64,000 bases of DNA from Auanema rhodensis (taxonomy: Eukaryota > Animalia > Nematoda), in contig OZ059896.1 in the NCBI GenBank assembly GCA_964057225.1, positions 11,284,001-11,348,000 of the forward strand, read 5' to 3'. The notes beneath the pieces are model-generated. The model did no database searches. It saw nothing but the letters and a program-made list of their open reading frames with translations, and had not been told where the DNA came from. Position numbers and translations under genes: made by a program. Every line of letters starts with the position of its first letter. Positions within the stretch are counted from its first letter, which is position 1. Of this stretch, positions 25,657 to 41,237 are shown one piece after another.

Positions 25657-25962
25657 TCAATCTTTTCTTTTTATTTTAAGACTACTCGCACTAACAACAC
25701 TGCCCTTTTCAATCTGGCGTAATTGTCGTTCGGCTCTACGTAAAATATATTCAATTTGTAGAAAGTCGGTAGGCTATAAAAGAAAATTATTTTCACAGAT
25801 AATTCTTTTAAAAATTCGTGCCTGATATTTTTTTGCACCAGCTCTGAATTCTTTCTGAATTTGCAATTTAATAGAAGGATCTAGACTTCGAGATGCTCGT
25901 AAAAAATTGGCATAAGTAGATAAAACTAAACGTTGGAGATTAGAATGAACTTTACTAGACAT
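25657..25962 (-). CDS. SDHAF1: Succinate dehydrogenase assembly factor 1 (LYR-motif family)
   Basis: Two exons: MSSKVHSNLQRLVLSTYANFLRA...KEFR / PTDFLQIEYILRRAERQL, matching the SDHAF1 pattern HSxLQxxVLSLY...EFR...IEYLxRRGxRQL. GC-AG intron 25774-25821. Confidence 0.85.
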
Positions 25963-26253
25963 ATATGTTCTTGATTGTTCTGTAAACAAATTAAAAGTTG
26001 ATATGACTGATAAACATATTGCAAAAGTAAAAATACAAATGGTCAGAAGTAATGATAACATTCAAATATAAACTCGAGCATTAGGCATGTTGCCAGTTGA
26101 TGATAATCAAGGTGAACAAGTTTGATCATAGATCTACGAGCTATTGCGTATACCATTAGTTACACGCAATTGATAATTAAGTCAATTATTACCTAGGTGA
26201 ACTGCAAAGAAAAGAGAGAATTTTTAATAATGTTTCATAGTATAGAACAAGAA

Positions 26254-28283
26254 TATGGAATCTGAAATTACTAAACTTAAAAGTACGAAACCTGTTGCTG
26301 TTTTGACATTGATGGATGAATCTAATGTAAGTTAAATATAGAATATCATGTACATATATAACTAATTAATTTGTTTTCTTGAGATTATACAAGATCTCCT
26401 ATCAGAATTATTGGATGAAATATCGTATGATAACGAAAACGTAATTTATTCATTGTTTGTTTTATATTTATTTATCAAATTATAGAATGCATTTGATATT
26501 TATACCATTCGTCAAACTAAATCCATATGTTCAATAGCTTCATCAGATGCTGGTAGATATGTTCGAATAAAATCCTAACCAATTGAAAATATTTAGGAGA
26601 TTTGTCTGCTTTTAGTGATGATGAATCAATAAGTCTAGAACCTATTCAATCGGATTCTGATTCAGAAGTAGAATTCGAAAGGTATTTCTCCTTTTCACTC
26701 GGAACTCAAAGCACTTTTGTGTTTTAGATATTTGCAACAAACAACTAAATGGAAGAAAAAGATTTTCATACAAGAACATTCTAGTCATTTGGAGACAAAA
26801 CGATTTAAACCTCAACGGATAAAAGATGACCAGTAATATCACTTCTTCTTTTTTTGTTAATTTTCAATTTAGAATTGATGATGAATATGATGCTCTACCA
26901 GGTTTTTCTTCATTAAATATTGATGACAAGAAAGAATTTTCTATTACTAAGTTTGGAATTATTAAAAATATAGTTGGTTGTATAGGTAATTTAAAGCTTT
27001 TAATATCTTTTAAAAACTTTTCTCTTAAGCTGTTATTAGCCCAGAAATTGAAACCACATTAGATCTAGAAACTGCCATTTTTGACGAGGTATTGATGTTA
27101 AATAGTAAATATGAAGGAGCTAGTATTTATAAATTTTAGAATAAAGTTGCTATCGGTCAAGTAGCTGATGTTATTGGTACTGTTAAAGAACCTTTGTATT
27201 GTATGAAACTACCTGAAGTGAGTTATACGATTGGTTAAGCAATTCCAAATTTAAAAATTTTAGAATCCACTCAATGTGGGACAGCATGTATACTACGCTC
27301 CGATGGAAGAAAGTTTAACTAAAACAATACTTGGTGCAAATCTTGAGGCGTAAGTTGAATCAAACATGTCTTGAAAGATATAAAGCATTATAGTCCATGG
27401 CAAGCCAATCAAATATCGAATGATGAAGAAGAAGTATTGTTTAGTGATGATGAAGAAGAAAAAGCTTATCGACAAAAAACTAAATCCAAGCTCAATTCAA
27501 GTTCGTTTAACATATATTTTAAAGATTTCAATTAATAATTATTGTAGATAAACCGCGAGGAAGAAAACGGGGTAACGTTCAATTTAATTTAACAGGAGAA
27601 CAACAAGAAAAAGTAACTAATAATTGGAATTGGAATCAATCAACTCGTAAAACATATAAACAATATGAATATCCACAAGATATTGAAGATGAGAAGCCTA
27701 AGTAGATACAACTTCCTTTTTTTCAAATTTTCACTTTTTCTTTTTAGTTTATCAGGCATTCCTCCTGCTCATAATCGTAATGCTTCTGCGCCGAATACCA
27801 CAACAAAACCTAGGTTTTCCTATCTTAAACAGGTAAGAAAAGAAGAAAAATCATTAAGAGCTTTAACATTTCAGAATCGTAAACCCAATAATACTGTTGT
27901 GCCTAACAATCCTTATCCTGAATTGGGATGTTATGATGAATTTCTTAAATAATTTACATCATGATATCTGTTGTTAATTGTTTTTTGTTATATCTTGTTA
28001 CAAGAAAGATTATTATGTTGTAATCTGATTTATAAATTTTTAAATGAAAAGTTGACTCATTCTATTTGATTTTTTTCCCGAACTTCTCACATCATTAAAA
28101 TTATATTGATGAATCACCTAGCAAATTTGGATCAGTTGGCACGCCTGAATAAATAACTCTGGGTCCCTTTAAAAGCAACCAATACCATATTACATATCAG
28201 TTTGGGAAGTCACAAAAATTTGCTCTTAAATTCTTCGTGGAACCCAATTTTCAAAATGAGATTCATTGTTTTAACCTGTTTCG
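26254..28283 (+). repeat. Left arm of a 2,030-bp inverted segmental duplication
   Basis: Reverse complement of 37105-39134; matched coordinates always sum to 65388 (no indels seen). Two substitutions seen: 26260/39128 and 27124/38264. Confidence 0.97.
26255..27952 (+). CDS. NAF1: H/ACA RNP assembly factor NAF1, copy 1
   Basis: Acidic N-terminus; Gar1/Naf1 domain (EYDALP..FGIIKNIVG..LDLETAIF..IGQVADVIGTVKEPLY..VYYAP); FSDDEEEKAY motif; TAA at 27950-27952. Confidence 0.85.
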
Positions 28284-29740
28284 TTTACACTGTATCGTGT
28301 AATGTACTTGGAAGAAATTCAATTACATTCAATCAGTTGGATAACCAAGTGGTAGTTTTATTAGTTATACTGTATATGCTTAATTATTTTTTTAGAAAAA
28401 TGCTGCCATTTCTGCAATTGGCAACATGCTGCCAGAGTTCTTATCCTCTGTATCCTCAAATGCAAGATATGAATTCATAAACATTTATTCAGTATGAATA
28501 ATTCATTGTAATTAAAAAAATATTTTGTTTAGAACACAACTATGCCACGTACACAGATTGAAGCCAGATTAAATGAATGGGCTGTCCAAAATGGAGTTCA
28601 GGTATATCTAAAGTTATAAGCTTCCGGTGAGATTACAAGGTTTAAGGACAAATGGAATGCCTTTAAAACCGATGCCGAAAATAAGAAGCAAGATATCTTT
28701 GTCAACGTTCGTGAAATTCTTAAGCAACTTCCAAATGTGTTCGAGCAAGTAGTTGTTGCTGATAATGACAAGGTATATACATGAATTCAATTTGGCCTGC
28801 AAAACTGAATGAAATTCAGAACTTGAGTGGTGATGAAGTTGTTTCAAAAGTAGTCAAGGCTTTTGATTCTGTTAAACCATATGCAGAAAATATCAAGACC
28901 AGCGTTCAAGATTTCATGAAAAACTTCGGGCGTGGTGAAAGACCAGTTAATGGAGTATGAAATTAATTTACTTTTCAAATTTTAACAATAATCCCAGGGA
29001 ACATTCCCATCTTTTGGAAACAGCACAGGATCCGGTGTTAGACCTGTATTCCCTGGTACTAACACGGGATTCCCTGGTACTAACACGGGATTCCCAGGAA
29101 CAAACAACGGTTTCAACGGTGAAAATAATGGATTCAACGGTGGAAACAGTGGTTTCAACGGTGGAAACAACGGTTTCAATGGTGGTAACAGTGGTTTCAA
29201 TGGTGGAAACAATGCTAATAATGGTTTCCCAAATAACAACAATGGATTTCCTACTGGAAACTCAGGAATGAATGTGAGTATTGCCACACAATAATGAACA
29301 CTTTCATTTGGGTGCATTAACATTCTCCATAATCGATAAGCATTTAGGGCAACAACAACAACAATAACAACAATAACAATGGTGGTTTTGGAACTCAGGT
29401 TTTGATAAAAAGCATTCTTTTAATTTTTATATATTTCAGGTTATGCCTGGAAACGGTCCAAATCCTTTTGGTGGATACCCAGTCATCGAGGTACTTGATA
29501 ATTCTTAATATAGATTTAATTGTTTTTATTTAAGACTAGAGAAAATGGAAACAACATGAATATTGGAGGGTTCCCAACTAATCAAGTAAAATATTTTTAT
29601 TTTCTCAAATCAGAAATTTCAAATTTTAGAATTCTTTGAATACATTCAATAACAACAGAGGAGCTGGACAATCTAATCAATTTCAGGTTTACTATTCTCA
29701 AACTTCTCTGATTTAAATAATTTTATGTTTTTAGGGATAA
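28256..29740 (+). CDS. Secreted SXP/RAL-2 (DUF148)-like protein with G/N/F-rich low-complexity tail
   Basis: Signal MRFIVLTCFVYTVSC; LPEFLSSVSSNARYEFINIYSNTTMPRTQIEARLNEWAVQNGVQDKWNAF fits the DUF148 pattern; then GFPGTNT/GFNGGNN repeats and poly-N. Confidence 0.8.
29049..29260 (+). repeat. Coding 21-bp tandem repeat encoding heptads GF(P/N)GxNx
   Basis: Units such as ttccctggtactaacacggga (x2) and ggtttcaa(c/t)ggtgg(a/t)aaca(g/a)(t/c); about 9 degenerate units. Confidence 0.85.
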
Positions 29741-30167
29741 GGGAGAAGTTGCTCCGCGCAAGTAACAAACTGGTAATTATCGAACTAATTTGAACATATT
29801 ATCTGTGCCAACATCGTCCTTCGATTAACACAACTTCACTACATCCATAATAAAATATTTTTAATTTTCAAGCTTTATCACGTTCTCAATATATTTGATT
29901 TTCAACAGTTTATACATATATTTATGGGTCAATAAAAAATGTTTGTTCAATTACGAGAAGCTGATTCACATTTCAAAAGTTGCCAAACAAGTAGGAAAAT
30001 AACAAAACAGTACTATCAGTTGTCCGGGGGCATCACTAGTAACAACGTATTCGATAAATTTTCTCTAAATAGTGAAACAGGTTTTCATATGCCCGCTTTA
30101 CTTTCATTTCTCCTTATTTCTCATTCATATTGAGATTTTGCTCAATTGCTGACAGTGTGTCGCTATT

Positions 30168-31984
30168 ATGATGCCGCGTAAGACAGTCTTGTCTCAACTT
30201 CTATTTTCTATATTAATATTTCTTTCAACAACTCATGCTATCAAGTTCGTAGAACAGGTAAATCTTATATAAACATTATGTTATGGATATCTGAAGTTTT
30301 CCCTTCATTTAAATTCACTAACTTAACTATATAACTTTTCATCTTTAATATTTTAAAGATGAAAGGTTTGATGTACAATATTCATAGCAAATGAGTTGGT
30401 TATAATGTGTATGTACTATTCGTAATACTATTAAGTTTTTCAAGTTTTACAAGTTGATGTTCTAATATATGCTACTATTTACCATATTTAAATAATGAAC
30501 ATTGAATAGTTTAAGCTTCGCTCTGTAGCAGCTTGATTATGCACAGATAGAAAAATTTCAATTTTGTTAATTATCTATTATATAATAACCAAAGTATGCT
30601 CGAGCGTTTTCAATAGCCAAGTTGATTTGAGAAGAGCAAAACAACTTCATAACTTGATCACTACAACATTGTTAGAACTGGTCCACCTTCTTATGACCGT
30701 TTGATATAGAGTACTTACAGAAAGAAGAAACCACAATTAATGTTTCTTATTGAAAAATAAAAATGACTTTTTCTAAACTGTATTCAATAGAAAACTTGAA
30801 TTATATCGTATGCAGTATATTTCTTTTAGAAAACTTTAGTTGTAAATCTAAGCAATTTTGAATTCAGAATATCCTCCAATATTTTTCAGATCCAAAAGTC
30901 GGCAATAGATGTACTTCATACTTCTCAAGTGAGTACAACTTCTCGTCAATGTACTTGCGATGAAATGACAAGTTGTTATGATTCTGCACGAAATGAAGCA
31001 TTTGCTTGCTTTGAACCATGCTGGCACGAAGTTAATAGCGTGAGCTTGAAATTGTCAAATTCAACTATGTTCAATATATTTAGATTACTAATGATCCAAG
31101 GACATTAAAAACATGTTTTGATGCTCGTAAAGGATTTTTACAGGAGCTAGTGACCTGCTTCAAAGACAAGTTGAATGCGTGAGTACTCTCGATCTGTTGG
31201 CACTTTTTATGATAACAATGTTTAGATGTGCTCCTGATGTTTCTCACGCTGAACAAACCCAAGTGAAGAATTATGATTACATAGCAATGATTAATAGAGC
31301 AGAGGTGGTTATTCAGAATCAAATGACCAAATTCATGCAATCAATTACATCACCCTCTGTTAAGGTAATAGTTATCTTCAATCAAACTTTTTTTCTTATA
31401 TCAACTAAACTTAATTTATAACAAAATGAATATAAATATTGAATGAATTACAAAACATTTAAAGTAGCAAATCTATATTGAAGTAATTTATTTTCTTATA
31501 TTCTTTGTTTATTAATGCAAATAACATAAAATGATAAGATAATATTTAATGTTGCCCTTCTCGTTTCTGTATTCTTAGTATATATATGTATGTCAGATTC
31601 CAATTTTACCAATACAACCGAGATAATCTAATTTTTTTAGAATGTGATAGATGCTGCTTCAAATCTAGGTCGCTGTGTGAAGGAATGTTTCATAGAAAAG
31701 AATAAGAATGGATTTTGTTTTGATCGAATACCGTTTGTTAAAAAAACATTTGTGAATTTTCTGAAATTTTTTTTCAGTTGCCAGCCAAACATTTCGGATA
31801 AGAATGCCAAAATGGCTGTCCGTCAATGCGCGCGTCAAATCAGTTGGAAAAATGAAATGGGTGAACTATGTAAATGCTCGAGTGAAGCTGGTGTCGGGTA
31901 AGCCCAATACATAAAATCTTTAATTTGTTTAATACTTTTAGAGGAATTTCGGATTACTGCGGAATGCTCCGAGTGATGGGATAA
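30168..31984 (+). CDS. Nematode-specific secreted Cys-rich protein (paralog B of 16471-18745)
   Basis: Signal exon MMPRKTVLSQLLFSILIFLSTTHA; RQCTCDEMTSCY...CVKECFIEKNKNGFCFDR..CQP...WKNEMGELCKCSSEAGV; Cys pattern and most intron positions match paralog A. Confidence 0.8.
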
Positions 31985-32560
31985 AACTATTATATAAAGC
32001 ATTTAATAAAATTTGATTCAGAACATCGAACCACATTAAAAGAGCGACGTAACAATACCCAACAAAAAAACTTACAAAACCGTAACTTATTTCATAAAGA
32101 GATGAAATGTCATACATACAAGCTGAAGTTTTCGATACGGAATTTAAAATAATTTGGATCAGTCTTCACATAAAAAGGTATAAAACATCAATTGGTTAGA
32201 AGTATGAAAGGGCTAGGTGCTATAAAAACTCAGATATTACAAAGAAGGCTTAGTGTCAAAAATAAAAGAATTTACAATATATTAACAGAAACCTAACATT
32301 CTCTCAATAAAGCTCTTGCTTTAATTTTCATGATATTAATAATGATATACTGTTTAAGATTAAATACAAAAGGAACCATATTTTCTAAAATTATCAATTC
32401 AACAAGAATTATACAATCGCACACCCGCATAGATACAAAACCGTTAATTACTAAAATTACTAGAGAAAAGGTATTCTATCCTACAAAGCAAGATATCGTA
32501 CACAAACGTAAGAACTTGAGCATACTCGTGGAAAATCATCAATTTTGTTCGCAAACGCGT

Positions 32561-35364
32561 TCACATTAGCCGATTAGGTTTAGATTTTCGGCTAGCCCGT
32601 GGTTGATCACCGCGTATAGATGGCCGACTGTTTGGGGTTGAAAATGGTTGCTTCAGCAAATGTCCATTGCTATTAGAATTGGAGGCAATATGAGTTTTAC
32701 TTTCATCAACATAGTTCCTAAAACAATGATAAATCAAAGACCTATTAAACTTCACAAACTTTTTCTTTTTTGTGCTGCTGAGATCAGGAGTAATAGAGAA
32801 CGAAGTATCCAAATCTGGGGGAGAAACATTTGCACTGTCTGGGCGCTTGGTCAAACGATCCGTTAACTAAAAAATATTCATAAAAATTAATCTTCAAAAA
32901 ATTAATACCTTATCTAAACGGAACTTTGTGCGAAAACGTTTGTAGAAGGTGTTAACCTCTATCGTAGACACTTTCAAATCCGCAGCAATATTATCAAGCT
33001 TCACTCCATATTTATAAAAAGCTAAAAATAAATAAATACATTATGCTGTTTTGAGAAGAAAACAAACATTTCACAAATGCCAGTAATTCTTTGTTAGAAT
33101 ATTGTTTAAATGCAAACATAACTGCTGAGTTTCCCCAAGATTTAATAAGTGAACACCTTAAAACACGAATATAAATGAATATTAAGAAATAAAATAAACT
33201 TACTTTTCGTGGGCTGGAGGTTCAAACTTTTTCGTATACTCACAGAGAACATCTTTAGACAACTTTACTGACCTTCCTTTTAAGTGTTGTGTAGGAATCT
33301 GAACCAGGAAACTACTTTCATAAATTGTTTAAAAATTACCTCATCAGGATTTGGCTTAGCAGAAATTTTAACTTGACGCTCTGTCTCTATTATTCGCAAA
33401 ATTTCCTCCTTGGGTTGAGCTTTTCGTTTTTCTTTTTCTACTTCATACCATTTCTGAGCAATTTCATGATCAGGTTCAATTAGAAAAGCTTGTGGTATTC
33501 TATGTTCTCGATATTTCCTGAAATGTAGTCTGATGAGAATACAAAAGGAGTAACACAACAATACCCGTAATAATATTCACAAAGATCACAATAACGCTCA
33601 GATAATCGTTTGGTATTTCCCCATATATATTTCGTACAGTTAACACATTCATAACGCTCAACTATATCCTTTTCGTTAATCATGCTGAAAGATATTCTTT
33701 TTATTGAAATTTTTTAAAAGTTAATGCCAACTTTTCGCGACATTGACATCTCTGGTATAATTCGTGATAGCAACCCCGGCGTTTAGTATTATAATAATAA
33801 TTAAGTATTTCCCCCATATAATATGTTTTCAACTAAAAATTAATTAATAAAAAACGAACTAAAATATAAACTAACGAATTTCTCTTGGAATTGTCTAAAA
33901 ATTTTCTCTCCTTCTCGATGCTTTCCAGTTGAGTTGCCTGGCTTTCTCAGAAGGCGCTCAAATTCTCGCTGTTGTATCACATTCAATCTTGAAAAAGAAA
34001 TACTGTGAGTGCGTAAGGTTCAAACACTACTTTTCAAACGGTTGTGGCAAACTTTCAAACAATTCTTTTTCAATAGTACGGAGCATTTCTGCGATGTCAT
34101 AATTACATTTCATCAATCGATTCAAAACCTAAACTATTGAATGTAAACCGGAATTAAATATGAAAGCATACAACATCAAGTCCTATTTTTCCTCGAAATT
34201 GACGCCTAATAACGTTCCAAGCTTCATCCAACTCTTTTTCCTTACCATTAATCGCTTTTGAATCCACCCAAATCTAGAAACAAATATTTATTTAAAAAAT
34301 AACAATATATACTACCAGCTCGTCTCGATCATCTGCATAATTAGAACGTGCCTTCTTTTTTCCTGGACTAACATTTGGCACAACAGCCTTAAAACATTCA
34401 ATAATATAGCAAGAACTCTAAATTAAAAAACCTGAAAAGCATCTCCAACTCCAATTTCACTAAATTTTCTTTTAGTCCGAATGCGCTCTTCTGTTTCAGA
34501 ACGTGTTTCGCGAGTTTTTGGACCAACCTATTTTATTAAACTTCAAATAGAAATATATATATATTAAAATCTAACCATATGAATTTTTAATCGATCCTTC
34601 TCTTTCTCTATATCCAATTTAGGTAATTGGTAAGGATTTCGGTAACCACCAGTAGGAGGATTAACAGGACGAGCTAAACAAAAATTAAGAGATGTTTAAC
34701 TCAGTTGAACAAACGTTGCTTAAAATTTGATGGATCCACATAATTGTTAACTATATCGTTCGGGTCGTCTCTGTTACGAGTAATTCTAAAAATAGAACAA
34801 GAAATAATACTAATGATGATACTAGATACCTATTTCTTTTCACTTCCCCATCATTATTATTATAGTTTCTCTTGTTATAAACTCTTTTCTCTGGTTTTGT
34901 GGATTCACTGGATCCCGAAGGTAATTGTCCATCATACTAAAAATAAGAGTTATCAAAAACATTAAAAAATAGGCACACCATTGCTTCAAGAATAGGAGGG
35001 GGTGTTAAAGAGCGTGTTGGGGACATCCGAGAATTGTCAGAAGCTCGTTCTTTATCATCGTCCAAAACTATCACAACATCGGAACATGTTAGAGTTGGAA
35101 TCTAAAAATAAAACAAATTCAAATTACAAAAAAACACTACGTACCTCCCCGTTGTCGCCATCACTATCGGCATTATTTTTTGAATCCATATTGAACCGTG
35201 AATTATTAGAGGGAACTGCGATATGCCTTCGTAAAGCATGAACCTGAATGAAAAACGTTCAGATTTCAAAATAAATCCTATCAAAAACTTACATTGTCTT
35301 GCCAACCGTTGTTTGTACCTTTTTTTGAATGTAGCAGATTTGGAGCAGCAGACGCTACTTCCAT
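32561..35364 (-). CDS. ELM2-SANT-GATA-like Zn finger-SANT protein (divergent HDAC co-repressor type); 5' end uncertain
   Basis: ELM2 EIGVGDAFQAVVP...LIW...LNRLMKCNYDIAEML; SANT-like EILNYYYNTK; CVNC-x14-CDLCEYYYGKYREHR; second SANT-like FVKSFYKYGVKLDNIAADL...EVNTFYKRFR. Confidence 0.7.
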
Positions 35365-37078
35365 ATTAGGCCTTAACGCCTTCTAGAATTAGCCAAATAT
35401 GGTCCTCTTATTCTGAATTACGTGAATTTAGTTTAAAATGCCTAAGAGAGGAAACATATCAATAATCAACACGTTTGAAATCATTAGAACGATAGTAGGG
35501 CTTCGCTTGAGCACCAATAACTTAAATATTGTTTAATATGCTATATTAAAGAATAACATTGATTTTAATTAGTACAGTAGCGTAGATCACATTACAGTAC
35601 ACCAATGAAACTGTTGGAACTGTGAATAAAATTGAACTTTAGGCCTTCTATGGCATTTATATGAATCCGTAACACTGAATTAGACCCAAAATAAACGATG
35701 AATTATAAAATATTTTTCCGAAGCACTTAGTGAAAACTGCATAGGGACGAAAATGGTTATGTTGCAGAGCATCAATCTCCACAACGACTAGACACTGTAG
35801 TAATGCAGAAGACTCCAGACGTCAAACAAATGAGAGAAACGTCATATGTGTGAGTTGATTGAGAGATTTAGAGAAAACGCCAGAGTGGCCAGCAAAAGAC
35901 CAAAGGGAGAACACAAGCGTTATTTACCGAATTATTTGAATTAAAGAATTTTAATAAATCAGGATCGCAGAAAATTTTGATATGAAATACTAAATCAAAT
36001 TTTGATTTTAGCGTATCGTCAAAATTCTTAGTATGACCGTGACAACGTAACCATTAAGCGCGAGCGGCTGTGTGCGGCCAACTACCGTATGTAGGGAGCA
36101 GAGATATGAAGACACAGAGAAAAACAGAAAAAATCGATAACTCCGCCCACTTTGAAAATCGTAAACGGTTCAACAGAATGATTGTTCATGAGTGTTAGAG
36201 CAGCAATATTATTTCTAAAGTGAAAAGTAAAGGGATAAACTTCAAAAATTAGAAATATTACAAGTTATGTCTATAAAAACAGAAAAAATTGTTATGCATA
36301 GTTTTTATCTCATTATTTAGCGCCATAGTTGGATCGTACTCGGAAAGATATGAACTCATACAAAATATGTCCTGATAATTTATTCAATCGACACAGTAAA
36401 TTTTTATACCAAGAAGCCATTTTAAAATCAAATTTCTCTATTCATTATCTGGAATTAAAGCTCCTTTGTTTGTTGCTCAGGAGATTGTTGAATATTAGTC
36501 ATTACAGTAGTATTGACACCTAATTTTTCTACTCCCCGTTCATCTTAATTCTCGCTAACTTCTTATAATTGGATTATATATTTTCCAGTTTACAAATTTT
36601 CTGTTATTCGGAAATTGTCGTGCGATTAACGCTTTGATAATTATCATAAATAATTCATATAATTGAAATATTCTGATTGAATTATATTTCTAGGAGGAAT
36701 TTCAACTTTTTCCTATTACTATCTTATGATCTCATCACATTTAAAGTTTGTTTTCAAAAAACTGACCAAACTGTCTGCAATCCTAATGAGCCTTAAAACT
36801 CATTTGCTATCTGTTGAACAGCAAGAATTATCTATGATTTTTTTGACATAATGTGATAAACAGAGATACACCGGAACAATTTGTATTTTCATCTTTGATT
36901 ATGCAAACAATGGTGTTTTTGATATATTAGAAAAAATTTTTCACTGTTTCATCGTCTTGTTATACTACATATGTGCAGCAAGCTGTAAATTATGAACACA
37001 TTTGTTATGACCTTTTGCATAAGCAACATCCTTTTTTCTCAATTTTCCTCTTAATAAACAAATTCCTCTATACTGATT

Positions 37079-37132
37079 TTATATAAAAAAATTGAAATCG
37101 AGTTCGAAACAGGTTAAAACAATGAATCTCAT
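37079..37132 (-). pseudogene. Truncated stub of the SXP/RAL-2-like gene (first 9 codons, then flanking sequence: MRFIVLTCFELDFNFFI*)
   Basis: The duplication ends inside the signal-peptide exon at 37105; the frame stops 8 codons later. Confidence 0.8.
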
Positions 37133-39134
37133 TTTGAAAATTGGGTTCCACGAAGAATTTAAGAGCAAATTTTTGTGACTTCCCAAACTGATATGTAATA
37201 TGGTATTGGTTGCTTTTAAAGGGACCCAGAGTTATTTATTCAGGCGTGCCAACTGATCCAAATTTGCTAGGTGATTCATCAATATAATTTTAATGATGTG
37301 AGAAGTTCGGGAAAAAAATCAAATAGAATGAGTCAACTTTTCATTTAAAAATTTATAAATCAGATTACAACATAATAATCTTTCTTGTAACAAGATATAA
37401 CAAAAAACAATTAACAACAGATATCATGATGTAAATTATTTAAGAAATTCATCATAACATCCCAATTCAGGATAAGGATTGTTAGGCACAACAGTATTAT
37501 TGGGTTTACGATTCTGAAATGTTAAAGCTCTTAATGATTTTTCTTCTTTTCTTACCTGTTTAAGATAGGAAAACCTAGGTTTTGTTGTGGTATTCGGCGC
37601 AGAAGCATTACGATTATGAGCAGGAGGAATGCCTGATAAACTAAAAAGAAAAAGTGAAAATTTGAAAAAAAGGAAGTTGTATCTACTTAGGCTTCTCATC
37701 TTCAATATCTTGTGGATATTCATATTGTTTATATGTTTTACGAGTTGATTGATTCCAATTCCAATTATTAGTTACTTTTTCTTGTTGTTCTCCTGTTAAA
37801 TTAAATTGAACGTTACCCCGTTTTCTTCCTCGCGGTTTATCTACAATAATTATTAATTGAAATCTTTAAAATATATGTTAAACGAACTTGAATTGAGCTT
37901 GGATTTAGTTTTTTGTCGATAAGCTTTTTCTTCTTCATCATCACTAAACAATACTTCTTCTTCATCATTCGATATTTGATTGGCTTGCCATGGACTATAA
38001 TGCTTTATATCTTTCAAGACATGTTTGATTCAACTTACGCCTCAAGATTTGCACCAAGTATTGTTTTAGTTAAACTTTCTTCCATCGGAGCGTAGTATAC
38101 ATGCTGTCCCACATTGAGTGGATTCTAAAATTTTTAAATTTGGAATTGCTTAACCAATCGTATAACTCACTTCAGGTAGTTTCATACAATACAAAGGTTC
38201 TTTAACAGTACCAATAACATCAGCTACTTGACCGATAGCAACTTTATTCTAAAATTTATAAATTCTAGCTCCTTCATATTTACTATTTAACATCAATACC
38301 TCGTCAAAAATGGCAGTTTCTAGATCTAATGTGGTTTCAATTTCTGGGCTAATAACAGCTTAAGAGAAAAGTTTTTAAAAGATATTAAAAGCTTTAAATT
38401 ACCTATACAACCAACTATATTTTTAATAATTCCAAACTTAGTAATAGAAAATTCTTTCTTGTCATCAATATTTAATGAAGAAAAACCTGGTAGAGCATCA
38501 TATTCATCATCAATTCTAAATTGAAAATTAACAAAAAAAGAAGAAGTGATATTACTGGTCATCTTTTATCCGTTGAGGTTTAAATCGTTTTGTCTCCAAA
38601 TGACTAGAATGTTCTTGTATGAAAATCTTTTTCTTCCATTTAGTTGTTTGTTGCAAATATCTAAAACACAAAAGTGCTTTGAGTTCCGAGTGAAAAGGAG
38701 AAATACCTTTCGAATTCTACTTCTGAATCAGAATCCGATTGAATAGGTTCTAGACTTATTGATTCATCATCACTAAAAGCAGACAAATCTCCTAAATATT
38801 TTCAATTGGTTAGGATTTTATTCGAACATATCTACCAGCATCTGATGAAGCTATTGAACATATGGATTTAGTTTGACGAATGGTATAAATATCAAATGCA
38901 TTCTATAATTTGATAAATAAATATAAAACAAACAATGAATAAATTACGTTTTCGTTATCATACGATATTTCATCCAATAATTCTGATAGGAGATCTTGTA
39001 TAATCTCAAGAAAACAAATTAATTAGTTATATATGTACATGATATTCTATATTTAACTTACATTAGATTCATCCATCAATGTCAAAACAGCAACAGGTTT
39101 CGTACTTTTAAGTTTAGTAATTTCAGACTCCATA
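37105..39134 (-). repeat. Right arm of the 2,030-bp inverted segmental duplication
   Basis: Mirror of 26254-28283; four ORF-track translations recur identically on the opposite strand. Confidence 0.97.
37436..39133 (-). CDS. NAF1: NAF1 copy 2, apparently intact with the same protein as copy 1
   Basis: ATG GAG TCT versus ATG GAA TCT in copy 1 (synonymous); the other observed difference is intronic; splice sites appear preserved. Confidence 0.85.
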
Positions 39135-39391
39135 AGTTAAAATAATTTCTCGAATTTAGAATGAAGATATCAATAGAACACTTGAATTAAAAATTTTCTG
39201 AATTAAATGTAAATGTTTTTAAAGTTTGTACGCAATAGCGTGTACGTACGCAATCCCAAAATTTACCAACTGAACAAAAAATGATGAAAGCTCCTCTAAA
39301 CAAAATTTTGTTGTCTATTTCTTTTTCTTTTCGAGTTTTAAATAAATATAAGTCTATTTTTTCTCAGATAAAATACTATTAATGCAAAAAG

Positions 39392-41237
39392 ATGCTTCTT
39401 AGAACATGTTTTTTGAAACATGTAATTTCCAGGAACTTTTCTTCCAGGAAATGGTGGGTCTCTTTTTGATTTTCGTGCTGTTAATGTTAGAATATTTTTC
39501 ATAATTTTTTTTAGTATTTCGGAATATCTGGTTGACCTAAGTCAAAGGGGTCTTGTTGCACAATCGTATCCTTCAAATATTCTAACTGATCACCGAAAGA
39601 ATGTAGAGTAGGTTGTTATCATTACTGGAATTGTTTAATTTTGAATATTTAGCCATTTGCCATCTGTTATATATGCTGGATTTGACCCCACTGCTGAAAG
39701 TTTGCATATTGGAAACTTATTAGTGTTGTTAAATTTGTTGCGAGGTTAGTATTTCTTCTAAAATCCATCTATATTTTTATTTTCAGCATCACAATTTCAC
39801 ATTAAGCCTATCGCTATTGTCGGAGGTGCTACAGCTACTATAGGTGATCCAAGTGGTCGTAATTCTGGTTGGTAAGGTTCAGATTTATTACTCAAATGTA
39901 TAACAACGAAGCTGATGCTTTTATTTTTAGAACGGGAAGAAGTAAAAGTAGATATAGTTAAATCACAAGCTACTTCTATAAAAAATCAATTGATGAATAT
40001 TGCAACAAATACGGAAATTGATTTGAAAATTTTAGATAATAATGATTGGTTTAAAAATGTTGGAAATCTTTTTTTTTTAAAATATAAACTTGAAGTTTTA
40101 GATGACTATGACTGAGTACCTCAGAGTTTGTAAACATCATAGGTTAGGAGAAATGTTGAGAATGGGAGCTATTAAGGTTTTTTTCATATATGTTTGTAAC
40201 GTACTTTTACTTTTCTTGTTAAGAATCGTATGACGGATAATAACGGAATATCGTTTACCGAATTTAGTTACCAGACTATGCAAGCGTATGATTGGCTTCA
40301 CTTGTCAAGGACTGAAAACTGCTTCTTCCAGGTAATGCTCAATTTCTAATATAGAAATATTTATATTTTTAGATTGGAGGTTCTGACCAATTGGGCCATC
40401 TCGATTTAGGAGCTCATTATATCAAGAGAGTCAGTAATAAGTTCGCTGGAGGTATAATAGTTAAAATTTATTTAAAATTCAGAAATTTTAGGCGTTTGTT
40501 TGCCGCTCGTCACTGACAGTTCTGGAAAGAAATTGGGAAAATCTGTAGGAGCTGCAGTGTGGCTCTCCCCTGAAAAAACGTCACCGTTCCATTTCTTCCA
40601 ATTCTTTAGGCAATTGCATGATACAGATGCTACACAACTGTTAACTCAATTCAGGTATATAAAAATATATTAGCTTTCTCTTAACGATATTATTTCAGTT
40701 TGAAGCCATATAATGAAGTAATTTCAATCGTTGACAACCATCAGAAAAATTTGGGTAAATGGATTGCTCAGGATGCATTGGCCAAAGAATTGACTATTGC
40801 CGTGCATGGAAAGTCTGGACTAGAAATAGCATTACGATGTACTCGTGCTTTATATCATGGTACAATGGAAGATATTGTCGAATTGACTCAAGATCAATTG
40901 TTGGGTCTTTTCGGACTTACAATTAAGGTTGTCTCTACATTTTGTTGTATAATATTCTATTCAAATCTTTAGGTTCCACGGGATATGAGGAAAATGAAAG
41001 AATTAGCAGCCATAACTCGTCAAGATAAGCAAAAGGGAGAAGTTTTAATGACCAAAGGGGCATTCAAAGTTAATGGAGAAAAGGTTTGTTAGGTTTTTGA
41101 AAAGTTCTAATATGTTTTTTTAGGTTACCGATCCCGAAAAGCCTATAAATATAGCGTCTCTCATTTTACCAAAAACTGAAAATTTAACATTAGTTTGCTG
41201 GGGAAAGCGTAAGTTCCAACTTGTTGAATGGCTTTAA
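39392..41237 (+). CDS. YARS2: Mitochondrial (bacterial-type) tyrosyl-tRNA synthetase
   Basis: Presequence-like [20 protein letters not shown]; [15 protein letters not shown]; [13 protein letters not shown]; [15 protein letters not shown]; QIGGSDQLG; GKKLGKS; C-terminal S4-like WGKRKF. Confidence 0.95.

Follow-up and report, generated by a model that had tools for sequence, protein, structure and literature searches.

How does a gene that is normally present once per genome come to stand twice on the same nematode chromosome, in opposite orientation and almost letter for letter? The window analysed here, a stretch of 64,000 nucleotides from Auanema rhodensis, contains two arms of 2,030 nt each (Table 1), which were identified as inverted copies by a repeat search and compared base by base. 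They align without any indel and differ at only two positions (n = 2 over 2,030 nt). The first difference (26260 A versus 39128 G, sense strand) is a synonymous GAA/GAG exchange in codon 2 of the NAF1 frame, the second (27124 T versus 38264) lies in intron 7 (27089–27139) of the 13-exon model. The outer boundary of the arms is found 1 nt upstream of the NAF1 start codon (ATG at 26255) and the inner boundary 28 nt into the coding sequence of the next gene (ATG at 28256), whose reading frame goes on only beside copy 1. This agrees in every point with the first-pass annotation, which had described the near-identical arms, their two differences and both boundaries. Both NAF1 frames are intact over all 13 exons and the encoded proteins are identical. 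Judged from its sequence, the locus is a whole-gene inverted duplication of a NAF1-type gene with sharp breakpoints that appear blind to gene limits.

Table 1. Features of the duplicated NAF1 locus; positions are those of the window.
Feature	Position	Strand	Remarks
LYR-motif gene	25660..25962	-	two exons, ATG 25962; SDHAF1-like by first reading
Rare 11-mer, copy 1 side	26140..26150	-	outside the arms, 104 nt before copy 1 ATG
Arm 1	26254..28283	+	NAF1 copy 1, its 3' region, 303-nt intergenic stretch, first 28 coding nt of next gene
NAF1 copy 1, CDS	26255..27952	+	13 exons, 381 codons, GT-AG introns of 40-57 nt; gene model
SXP/RAL-2-like next gene	28256..29500 (end approximate)	+	signal peptide, SXP/RAL-2 (Ani s 5-like) domain, Gly/Asn-rich repeat
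Spacer	28284..37104	.	8,821 nt
Cysteine-rich open frames in spacer	~30830-31900	+	
Multi-exon gene in spacer	~32564-35100	-	
Stub of SXP/RAL-2-like gene beside copy 2	37080..37132	-	9 native codons, then spacer; stop after 17 codons
AGTT, left direct-repeat member flanking arm 2	37101..37104	+	
Arm 2	37105..39134	-	reverse complement of arm 1 with 2 substitutions
NAF1 copy 2, CDS	37436..39133	-	same protein as copy 1, one synonymous difference
AGTT, right direct-repeat member flanking arm 2	39135..39138	+	
Rare 11-mer, copy 2 side	39229..39239	+	95 nt before copy 2 ATG, 42 nt upstream of YARS2 ATG
YARS2, bacterial-type (mitochondrial) tyrosyl-tRNA synthetase	39281..41237 (end approximate)	+	

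The genome searched is a 180.9-Mb HiFi assembly of the inbred A. rhodense line APS4 with 236-fold coverage. Across this assembly the arm sequence occurs exactly twice and the spacer once. The window itself is free of gaps (no N), and no other high-identity repeat of at least 300 nt was found in it or in 200 kb of nearby sequence (264 kb in total). Identity between the two copies stops abruptly at all four edges: no co-linear similarity was detected over 3 kb of the flanks, whether outer or inner, and the alignment scores of the flanks do not exceed those of shuffled sequence. An older and larger duplication, of which the arms would be the remainder, is ruled out by this absence of co-linear similarity past either edge.

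The assignment of the duplicated gene to NAF1, an assembly factor of H/ACA ribonucleoproteins which is normally single-copy, is supported by domain searches. Exon 8 alone matches the Pfam Gar1/Naf1 family (PF04410; E 1.1e-5, 25.5 bits), and in a six-frame scan of the genome with the same family, which scores single exons, copy 2 reached 29.3 bits, exactly the family cut-off, and copy 1 28.7 bits. A PDB search with exon 8 returned yeast NAF1 (2v3m) as its sole match, weak at E 0.72; exons 6, 7 and 9 gave no PDB match when searched singly. NAF1 binds dyskerin/Cbf5 and is swapped for GAR1 during maturation of the particle. Glu, Lys, Ser and Asp are abundant in the 381-aa model, which has no RGG runs and thus resembles NAF1, with yeast Naf1 (core 2v3m) as reference, in its Gar1/Naf1 core domain, in its acidic serine-rich flanks and in the lack of RGG boxes. 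The NAF1 call appears sound because a canonical RGG-rich GAR1 is encoded at a separate locus (C4:10.885 Mb), where a Gar1 domain of 61 bits is flanked by RGG repeats. Elsewhere NAF1 usually exists as one gene copy, unlike the two found here, which are assigned from single-exon matches.

Each NAF1 copy lies head-to-head with a different gene, copy 1 with the LYR-motif gene (292 nt between the ATGs) and copy 2 with YARS2 (147 nt between the ATGs). The first-pass annotation had taken both neighbours for mitochondrial housekeeping genes. The orientation holds and YARS2 matches its family. The LYR family stands at the level of a lead, with no Pfam or NCBIfam match on single exons, and the name SDHAF1 was not confirmed. 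On the inner side of the arms, the predicted secreted SXP/RAL-2-like gene (one exon matches PF02520 with E 6e-5) is complete only next to copy 1, where its first 28 nt belong to arm 1. The NAF1 3' region in front of it contains an AATAAA at 28148. The stub beside copy 2 is preceded by the duplicated upstream region of the same gene. Most open frames of the spacer have no Pfam or NCBIfam match, its right end comprises 1.7 kb without long open frames, and no non-coding RNA genes were detected in arms or spacer with Rfam at E values up to 0.1.

We give a probability of about 0.5 to the reading that this structure arose as a young segmental duplication, in which a copy of the 2,030-bp piece entered the chromosome 8.8 kb downstream in reverse orientation. 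One end of that piece would lie 1 nt ahead of the NAF1 start codon and the other within the next gene, after its first 28 coding nt, and its target would have been the divergent intergenic region 147 nt upstream of YARS2. There, a break with a 4-nt stagger would have given rise to a direct repeat, AGTT, on both sides of the new copy, which would have been joined end-to-end with no microhomology at either new junction. Copy 1 would represent the ancestral context, with the LYR gene on one side and the uninterrupted downstream gene on the other, and copy 2 a complete coding copy without its native upstream DNA which, lacking that DNA, would have to use the promoter region on the YARS2 side if it is expressed.

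Several features of the junctions are consistent with such an insertion. The context of the putative donor is undisturbed: it is only beside copy 1 that the downstream gene continues across 28283/28284, and because it spans this position the inner junction of copy 1 must be ancestral. The upstream contexts point weakly in the same direction, as a string resembling nematode splice acceptors (tttcatag) stands 14 nt ahead of the copy 1 ATG, which also has an A at -3, whereas copy 2 has neither. Both junctions of copy 2 are blunt, and arm 2 is flanked directly by AGTT on either side; at the outer edge of arm 1 the preceding letters are AGAA. A flanking direct repeat of at least 4 nt is found for 1.0% of random position pairs in the window. 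As the repeat was noticed post hoc among several junction comparisons, the chance rises to ~3% after correction and the evidence is modest. Still, AGTT around copy 2 appears to tilt the balance from a staggered-break inversion towards an inverted insertion.

No microhomology with the donor context was found at 37104/37105 or at 39134/39135, which rules out microhomology-mediated template switching as the source of copy 2. The suggestion that the shared tATGGA, followed by a mismatch, might be junction microhomology is not supported, since a template switch would not leave such a mismatch; it is simpler to assume that a base 7 nt inside the arm was substituted later. The insertion has a weak point, in that no known process has been shown to deliver a 2-kb reversed copy to a break 8.8 kb away. 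Moreover, a boundary exactly at the start codon is expected with a chance of ~1%, whichever break model is taken. A rare 11-mer that is common to both upstream flanks could hint at a more complex history. It does not behave as a common regulatory word, with 12 exact genome-wide occurrences versus 9 for its reversed control and 583 versus 1211 with one mismatch.

A staggered-break micro-inversion is a possible, albeit more tentative, origin of the same arrangement. NAF1 would then have been ancestrally head-to-head with YARS2, and a 10.9-kb segment of spacer plus NAF1 would have been inverted after one clean break beside the LYR gene and a pair of single-strand nicks, spaced 2,030 nt from each other, at the NAF1 end. 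Fill-in would leave NAF1 at both ends and create new junctions at 26253/26254 and 37104/37105. The final structure predicted in this way is exactly the one seen, with inverted copies of unique sequence at both ends of the segment, and the continuity of the downstream gene across 28283/28284 fits it equally well as the insertion. In Drosophila, inverted duplications are present at the breakpoints of 17 out of 29 fixed inversions (PMC1885836). The AGTT repeat around arm 2 would, however, be pure coincidence (~1%) in an inversion, and the inverted mini-duplication predicted at the other breakpoint amounts to just 2 nt (AA at 26252–26253, TT at 37103–37104), a match at chance level (~11%). It also speaks weakly against an inversion that copy 1, which would be the derived copy, has the more native-looking upstream context. 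In addition, 2 kb of DNA must unwind, a difficulty which is conceded by the authors of the model (PMC1885836). The first-pass annotation had considered insertion and inversion, both of which are indeed formally possible, with a lean to the staggered-break inversion; it is this lean that is weakened by AGTT and by the 2-nt match.

The age of the duplication, which under an inverted insertion would be young, could be misjudged if older arms, possibly common to relatives, had been kept near-identical by gene conversion. This explanation, which we regard as doubtful, concerns the age only and fits either origin; the divergence of 0.1% would then be uninformative on age. In favour of conversion, one of the two differences sits 7 nt inside the outer edge, in the zone least often covered by conversion tracts, and the rare 11-mer is found in both upstream flanks at nearly equal distance from the ATG. 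Yet the flanks show no relatedness even at the very edges, where the last 95 nt before each ATG score below shuffled sequence, and long-term conversion usually gives a gradient of similarity rather than a cliff. Two differences are furthermore too few for any pattern.

It is unlikely that the second arm was made by the assembler or during curation from one NAF1 locus, because two copies of the arms and one of the spacer are all that the genome contains and the window is free of gaps. With an inbred line and 236-fold coverage, a 2-kb repeat is far below the HiFi read length, and HiFi reads normally span an arm of 2 kb plus both flanks. The arms differ at two sites, as expected of two loci and not of one locus assembled twice, and no second repeat of this kind is present in the 264 kb examined. 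In known fold-back artefacts of long reads the spacer is absent or tiny and does not measure 8.8 kb. It can also be reasoned that a simple heterozygous inversion cannot yield the junction at 37104/37105. The assembly is thus probably correct. A retro-copy is rejected, given that introns and intergenic DNA are kept and that neither a poly(A) tail nor an AG acceptor ahead of the 5' edge is present. A transposon with the arms as terminal inverted repeats and the spacer as its load, which the inverted-repeat-bounded block and the short flanking repeat superficially recall, is effectively refuted by copy number (arms and spacer are found nowhere else in 181 Mb); the arms moreover consist of a housekeeping gene, no transposase-like frame was found and AGTT flanks one arm only and not the whole block.

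The duplication looks genuine, recent and of an ordinary kind, and does not amount to new biology. What makes the locus valuable is that it presents a clean and datable case of nematode gene duplication, a short and inverted event close to its source that takes no account of gene limits. Its outcome is a complete coding copy that was stripped of its promoter and placed beside the promoter of another gene, together with a stub of nine codons from the neighbour. As NAF1 is normally single-copy, expression of copy 2 would be a simple test of promoter capture. In a more far-reaching reading, which we hold to be very improbable, the spacer would be a putative germline-invertible 8.8-kb cassette of three genes and copy 2 a promoter-swapped NAF1, expressed from the YARS2 side and kept for dosage; one conceivable reason is a higher demand for H/ACA RNP assembly in this worm, whose embryos all undergo chromosome breakage and the addition of new telomeres. 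The first-pass annotation had proposed recurrent flipping, doubled dosage or dsRNA formation as possible effects of the arms. Because both arms hold the first 28 coding nt of the neighbour, flipping of the spacer would spare every gene and would be neutral.

Segments that invert by non-allelic homologous recombination are known from the human X-linked FLNA-EMD inversion and from the plastid inverted repeat. The locus resembles them in having near-identical kb-scale inverted arms around a unique spacer, and both recurrent flipping that leaves genes unaffected and gene conversion between the arms act on repeats of this type. The arms described here are short in comparison (2 kb), and the likeness is one of sequence arrangement. 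Breakpoint duplications in the Drosophila melanogaster group are likewise formed by unique, gene-bearing sequence that is inverted at both ends of a segment, and duplication at one end only is common there (PMC1885836). Those inversions are large and were polarised by outgroups (PMC1885836), whereas the segment considered here measures only ~11 kb and its polarity is read from one genome. The direct AGTT repeat around one copy is, furthermore, not predicted by the Drosophila staggered-break model.

The closest parallel is found in C. elegans, whose newborn gene duplicates were described by Katju and Lynch as short-span, adjacent and inverted, with a median span of 1.4 kb (summarised in PMC2728529). 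The A. rhodensis locus belongs to a rhabditid as well and shares with those duplicates, as they are portrayed there, a short span (~2 kb), the nearby position on the same chromosome, the inverted orientation and a near-zero divergence (PMC2728529). There, too, breakpoints ignore gene limits and neighbours are partly copied, just as the SXP/RAL-2-like gene is here (PMC2728529). The present case differs in that one CDS was captured whole, with its entire upstream region excluded to the nucleotide, and in that the copies stand three genes apart and not directly adjacent. In combination with reads and a sister genome, the locus could reveal the repair route behind the inverted newborn duplicates that have long been noted in C. 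elegans.

Repeat finding over all 64 kb of the window detected only one inverted pair, the two NAF1-bearing arms at 26254-28283 (arm 1) and 37105-39134 (arm 2), which are 2,030 nt long each and lie 8,821 nt apart. Base-by-base comparison revealed no indel and two substitutions between them, at 26260/39128 and 27124/38264. One is GAA/GAG in codon 2, the sole coding difference between the NAF1 copies, and the other falls into intron 7. All coordinates of the first-pass annotation, as well as its description of one synonymous and one intronic change, were thereby confirmed. Both copies encode an identical protein, and the duplication leaves two intact NAF1 reading frames. Identity ends sharply at all four arm edges. 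No co-linear similarity was found in 3 kb of outer and inner flank. Alignments of the 95 nt before each ATG, and of 150 nt on the inside of each arm edge, scored no better than shuffled sequence.

Features of the arms, their surroundings and the GAR1 locus
Feature	Position	Strand	Remarks
NAF1 copy 1	26255-27952	+	arm 1; 13 exons, 381 codons
NAF1 copy 2	39133 down to 37436	-	arm 2; mirrored exons
AATAAA	28148		arm 1, 3' of NAF1 stop codon
Intergenic DNA inside arm			303 nt, between NAF1 and next gene
First 28 coding nt of SXP/RAL-2-like gene	ATG at 28256		end of arm 1
Cysteine-rich open frames	30830-31900	+	spacer gene, no family match
Multi-exon gene	32564-35100	-	spacer gene, no family match; CxxC...CxxC zinc-finger-like exon 33483-33713; basic, coiled-coil-like exon
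11-mer GCTATTGCGTA	26140-26150		outside arm 1, 104 nt before NAF1 copy 1 ATG
11-mer GCTATTGCGTA	39229-39239		outside arm 2, 95 nt before NAF1 copy 2 ATG
Canonical GAR1	C4:10885121-10885261	-	Gar1 domain, 61 bits, between Arg-Gly-Gly repeat exons

The duplicated structure is very probably real. The searched genome (180,911,798 bp, 112 sequences), in which the window occupies C4:11284001-11348000, is very likely the 180.9-Mb A. rhodense assembly of a 2026 preprint, produced for the inbred line APS4 from PacBio HiFi reads using hifiasm, purge_dups, Hi-C scaffolding and manual curation (contig N50 16.4 Mb; HiFi coverage of gene-rich regions averaging 236-fold). A 2-kb repeat lies well within the length of a single HiFi read, the line is inbred, no gap interrupts the window and the arms differ at two fixed sites, all of which argues for a genuine structure. 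The same is suggested by the arms and the spacer between them (28284-37104) being found nowhere else in the genome, with no further long repeat in the window and 200 kb of nearby sequence. Nor could the 37104/37105 junction have arisen from a simple heterozygous inversion.

Protein searches were made exon by exon, joined exons being used for the frame check and the copy comparison. In the arm 1 gene model the introns are 40-57 nt long, all with GT-AG ends, and exon 8 on its own gave a match to the Pfam Gar1/Naf1 domain (E 1.1e-5). A six-frame scan located this family at three loci genome-wide, the two arms (29.3 and 28.7 bits) and C4:10.885 Mb (61 bits), the last being canonical GAR1 as Arg-Gly-Gly repeats flank its domain. 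In the window gene the flanks are acidic and rich in serine and RGG boxes are lacking; the only PDB match of this gene, which is not significant, is yeast Naf1. Together with the separate GAR1 these features make NAF1, the name already chosen in the first-pass annotation, a sensible one. GAR1 lies on the same chromosome as the NAF1 pair, about 0.43 Mb away.

Each copy faces a different gene. On the right of arm 2, the ATGs of NAF1 copy 2 and its neighbour are 147 nt apart. This neighbour is a bacterial-type tyrosyl-tRNA synthetase gene, as shown by Pfam tRNA-synt_1b on five exon pieces (three above the family cut-off), an NCBIfam tyrS match and PDB matches at ~1e-13 to TyrRS from bacteria and from human mitochondria, which confirms the name YARS2. 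To the left of arm 1 lies a small two-exon gene, 292 nt from ATG to ATG. Its single exons gave no Pfam or NCBIfam match; a protein atlas placed exon 1 among LYR-motif proteins (score 0.85, all ten best matches in the family). Membership of the LYR family is supported at the level of a lead, while the specific name SDHAF1 given earlier found no confirmation by any tool.

The gene following NAF1 copy 1 encodes a signal peptide and a Gly/Asn-rich repeat, and one of its exons matches SXP/RAL-2 (Ani s 5-like; E 6e-5). This repeat is long (28992-29420, plus strand; units like GFNGGN and GFPGTN) and is followed by a poly-Asn run, an unusual tail for an Ani s 5-type domain. As noted previously, the signal exon is intact only beside copy 1: the gene is continuous across 28283/28284, and next to arm 2 the frame opened by the same start stops after 17 codons. 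As the gene runs unbroken across it, the 28283/28284 junction is ancestral. At the right end of the spacer, 35400-37104 (1.7 kb) lacks long open frames, matched nothing in Rfam and is single-copy in the genome; it is presumably a divergent intergenic region that received arm 2. The duplicated upstream region of the SXP/RAL-2-like gene would now direct a 17-codon stub into this non-coding DNA.

Two histories remain for the arms, both already proposed in the first-pass annotation. With an inverted insertion, the order LYR gene, NAF1, SXP/RAL-2-like gene would be ancestral, and a copy of 26254-28283 would have been placed in reverse between 37104 and 39135. Junction comparison found the direct repeat AGTT on both sides of arm 2 (37101-37104 and 39135-39138) and no microhomology with the donor context at either arm 2 junction. 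The repeat resembles the product of fill-in at a break with a 4-nt stagger, into which a linear copy might have been ligated. In the window, 1.0% of random position pairs have a flanking direct repeat of at least 4 nt (11% of at least 2 nt); the support from AGTT is modest and post hoc. An A at -3 and, 14 nt before the ATG, an acceptor-like tttcatag precede copy 1 but not copy 2; the upstream context of copy 1 looks weakly more native. A staggered-break inversion appears less likely. In that history NAF1 first faced YARS2; two nicks at a distance of 2,030 nt preceded the inversion of spacer plus NAF1, and once these were filled in, either end carried NAF1. Inversions in Drosophila are a documented case of the mechanism, and many of them carry a duplication at one end only (PMC1885836). 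The inversion model predicts a small inverted repeat at 26253 and 37104, where only 2 nt were found. Given this short repeat, AGTT, the blunt arm 2 junctions and the copy 1 context, we favour the inverted insertion, with a probability of about 0.5. The earlier suggestion that tATGGA plus a mismatch represents junction microhomology was rejected, as a template switch leaves no mismatch against the copied tract and a pre-existing in-frame ATG would be needed at the target; the simpler reading is a substitution that lies 7 nt within the arm. Two neat features mark the event: an arm boundary that coincides exactly with the NAF1 start codon, and what may be a 4-nt target duplication.

Both upstream flanks share GCTATTGCGTA, oriented alike with respect to NAF1, and each has a second ATTGCGT-type half copy nearby (26166-26173 and 39247-39254). 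The 11-mer has 12 exact copies in 181 Mb, with no genome-wide enrichment when one mismatch is allowed. In trials with random 146-mers, 3.7% had an 11-nt word in common with the left flank and 0.4% had it at a comparable distance from the end. The sharing may reflect chance, a bZIP/C-EBP-like site shared by two promoters of mitochondrial genes, or a relic of older homology or of a more complex history.

With 2 differences in 2,030 nt the arms diverge by 0.1%. As nematode mutation rates are a few times 1e-9 per site per generation, the duplication would be roughly 1e5 to 3e5 generations old, only if no gene conversion occurred. It is well established that inverted arms can convert each other, and one difference lies at the very arm edge, where conversion tracts least often extend, so the origin may be older; the abrupt drop in similarity at the edges speaks against a long history.

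As it lacks native upstream DNA, NAF1 copy 2 could presumably be expressed only via the 147-nt YARS2-side region. Flipping of the spacer by recombination between the arms is plausible and would be neutral, breaking no gene as both arms hold the first coding nucleotides of the SXP/RAL-2-like gene. A hairpin transcript from the two NAF1 copies seems unlikely, as they converge across 8.8 kb and three genes. The inverted duplication fits the pattern of newborn gene duplicates in C. elegans, for which the summary of Katju and Lynch in PMC2728529 gives a median span of 1.4 kb, and the NAF1 pair is a further case of this known kind of newborn duplication.
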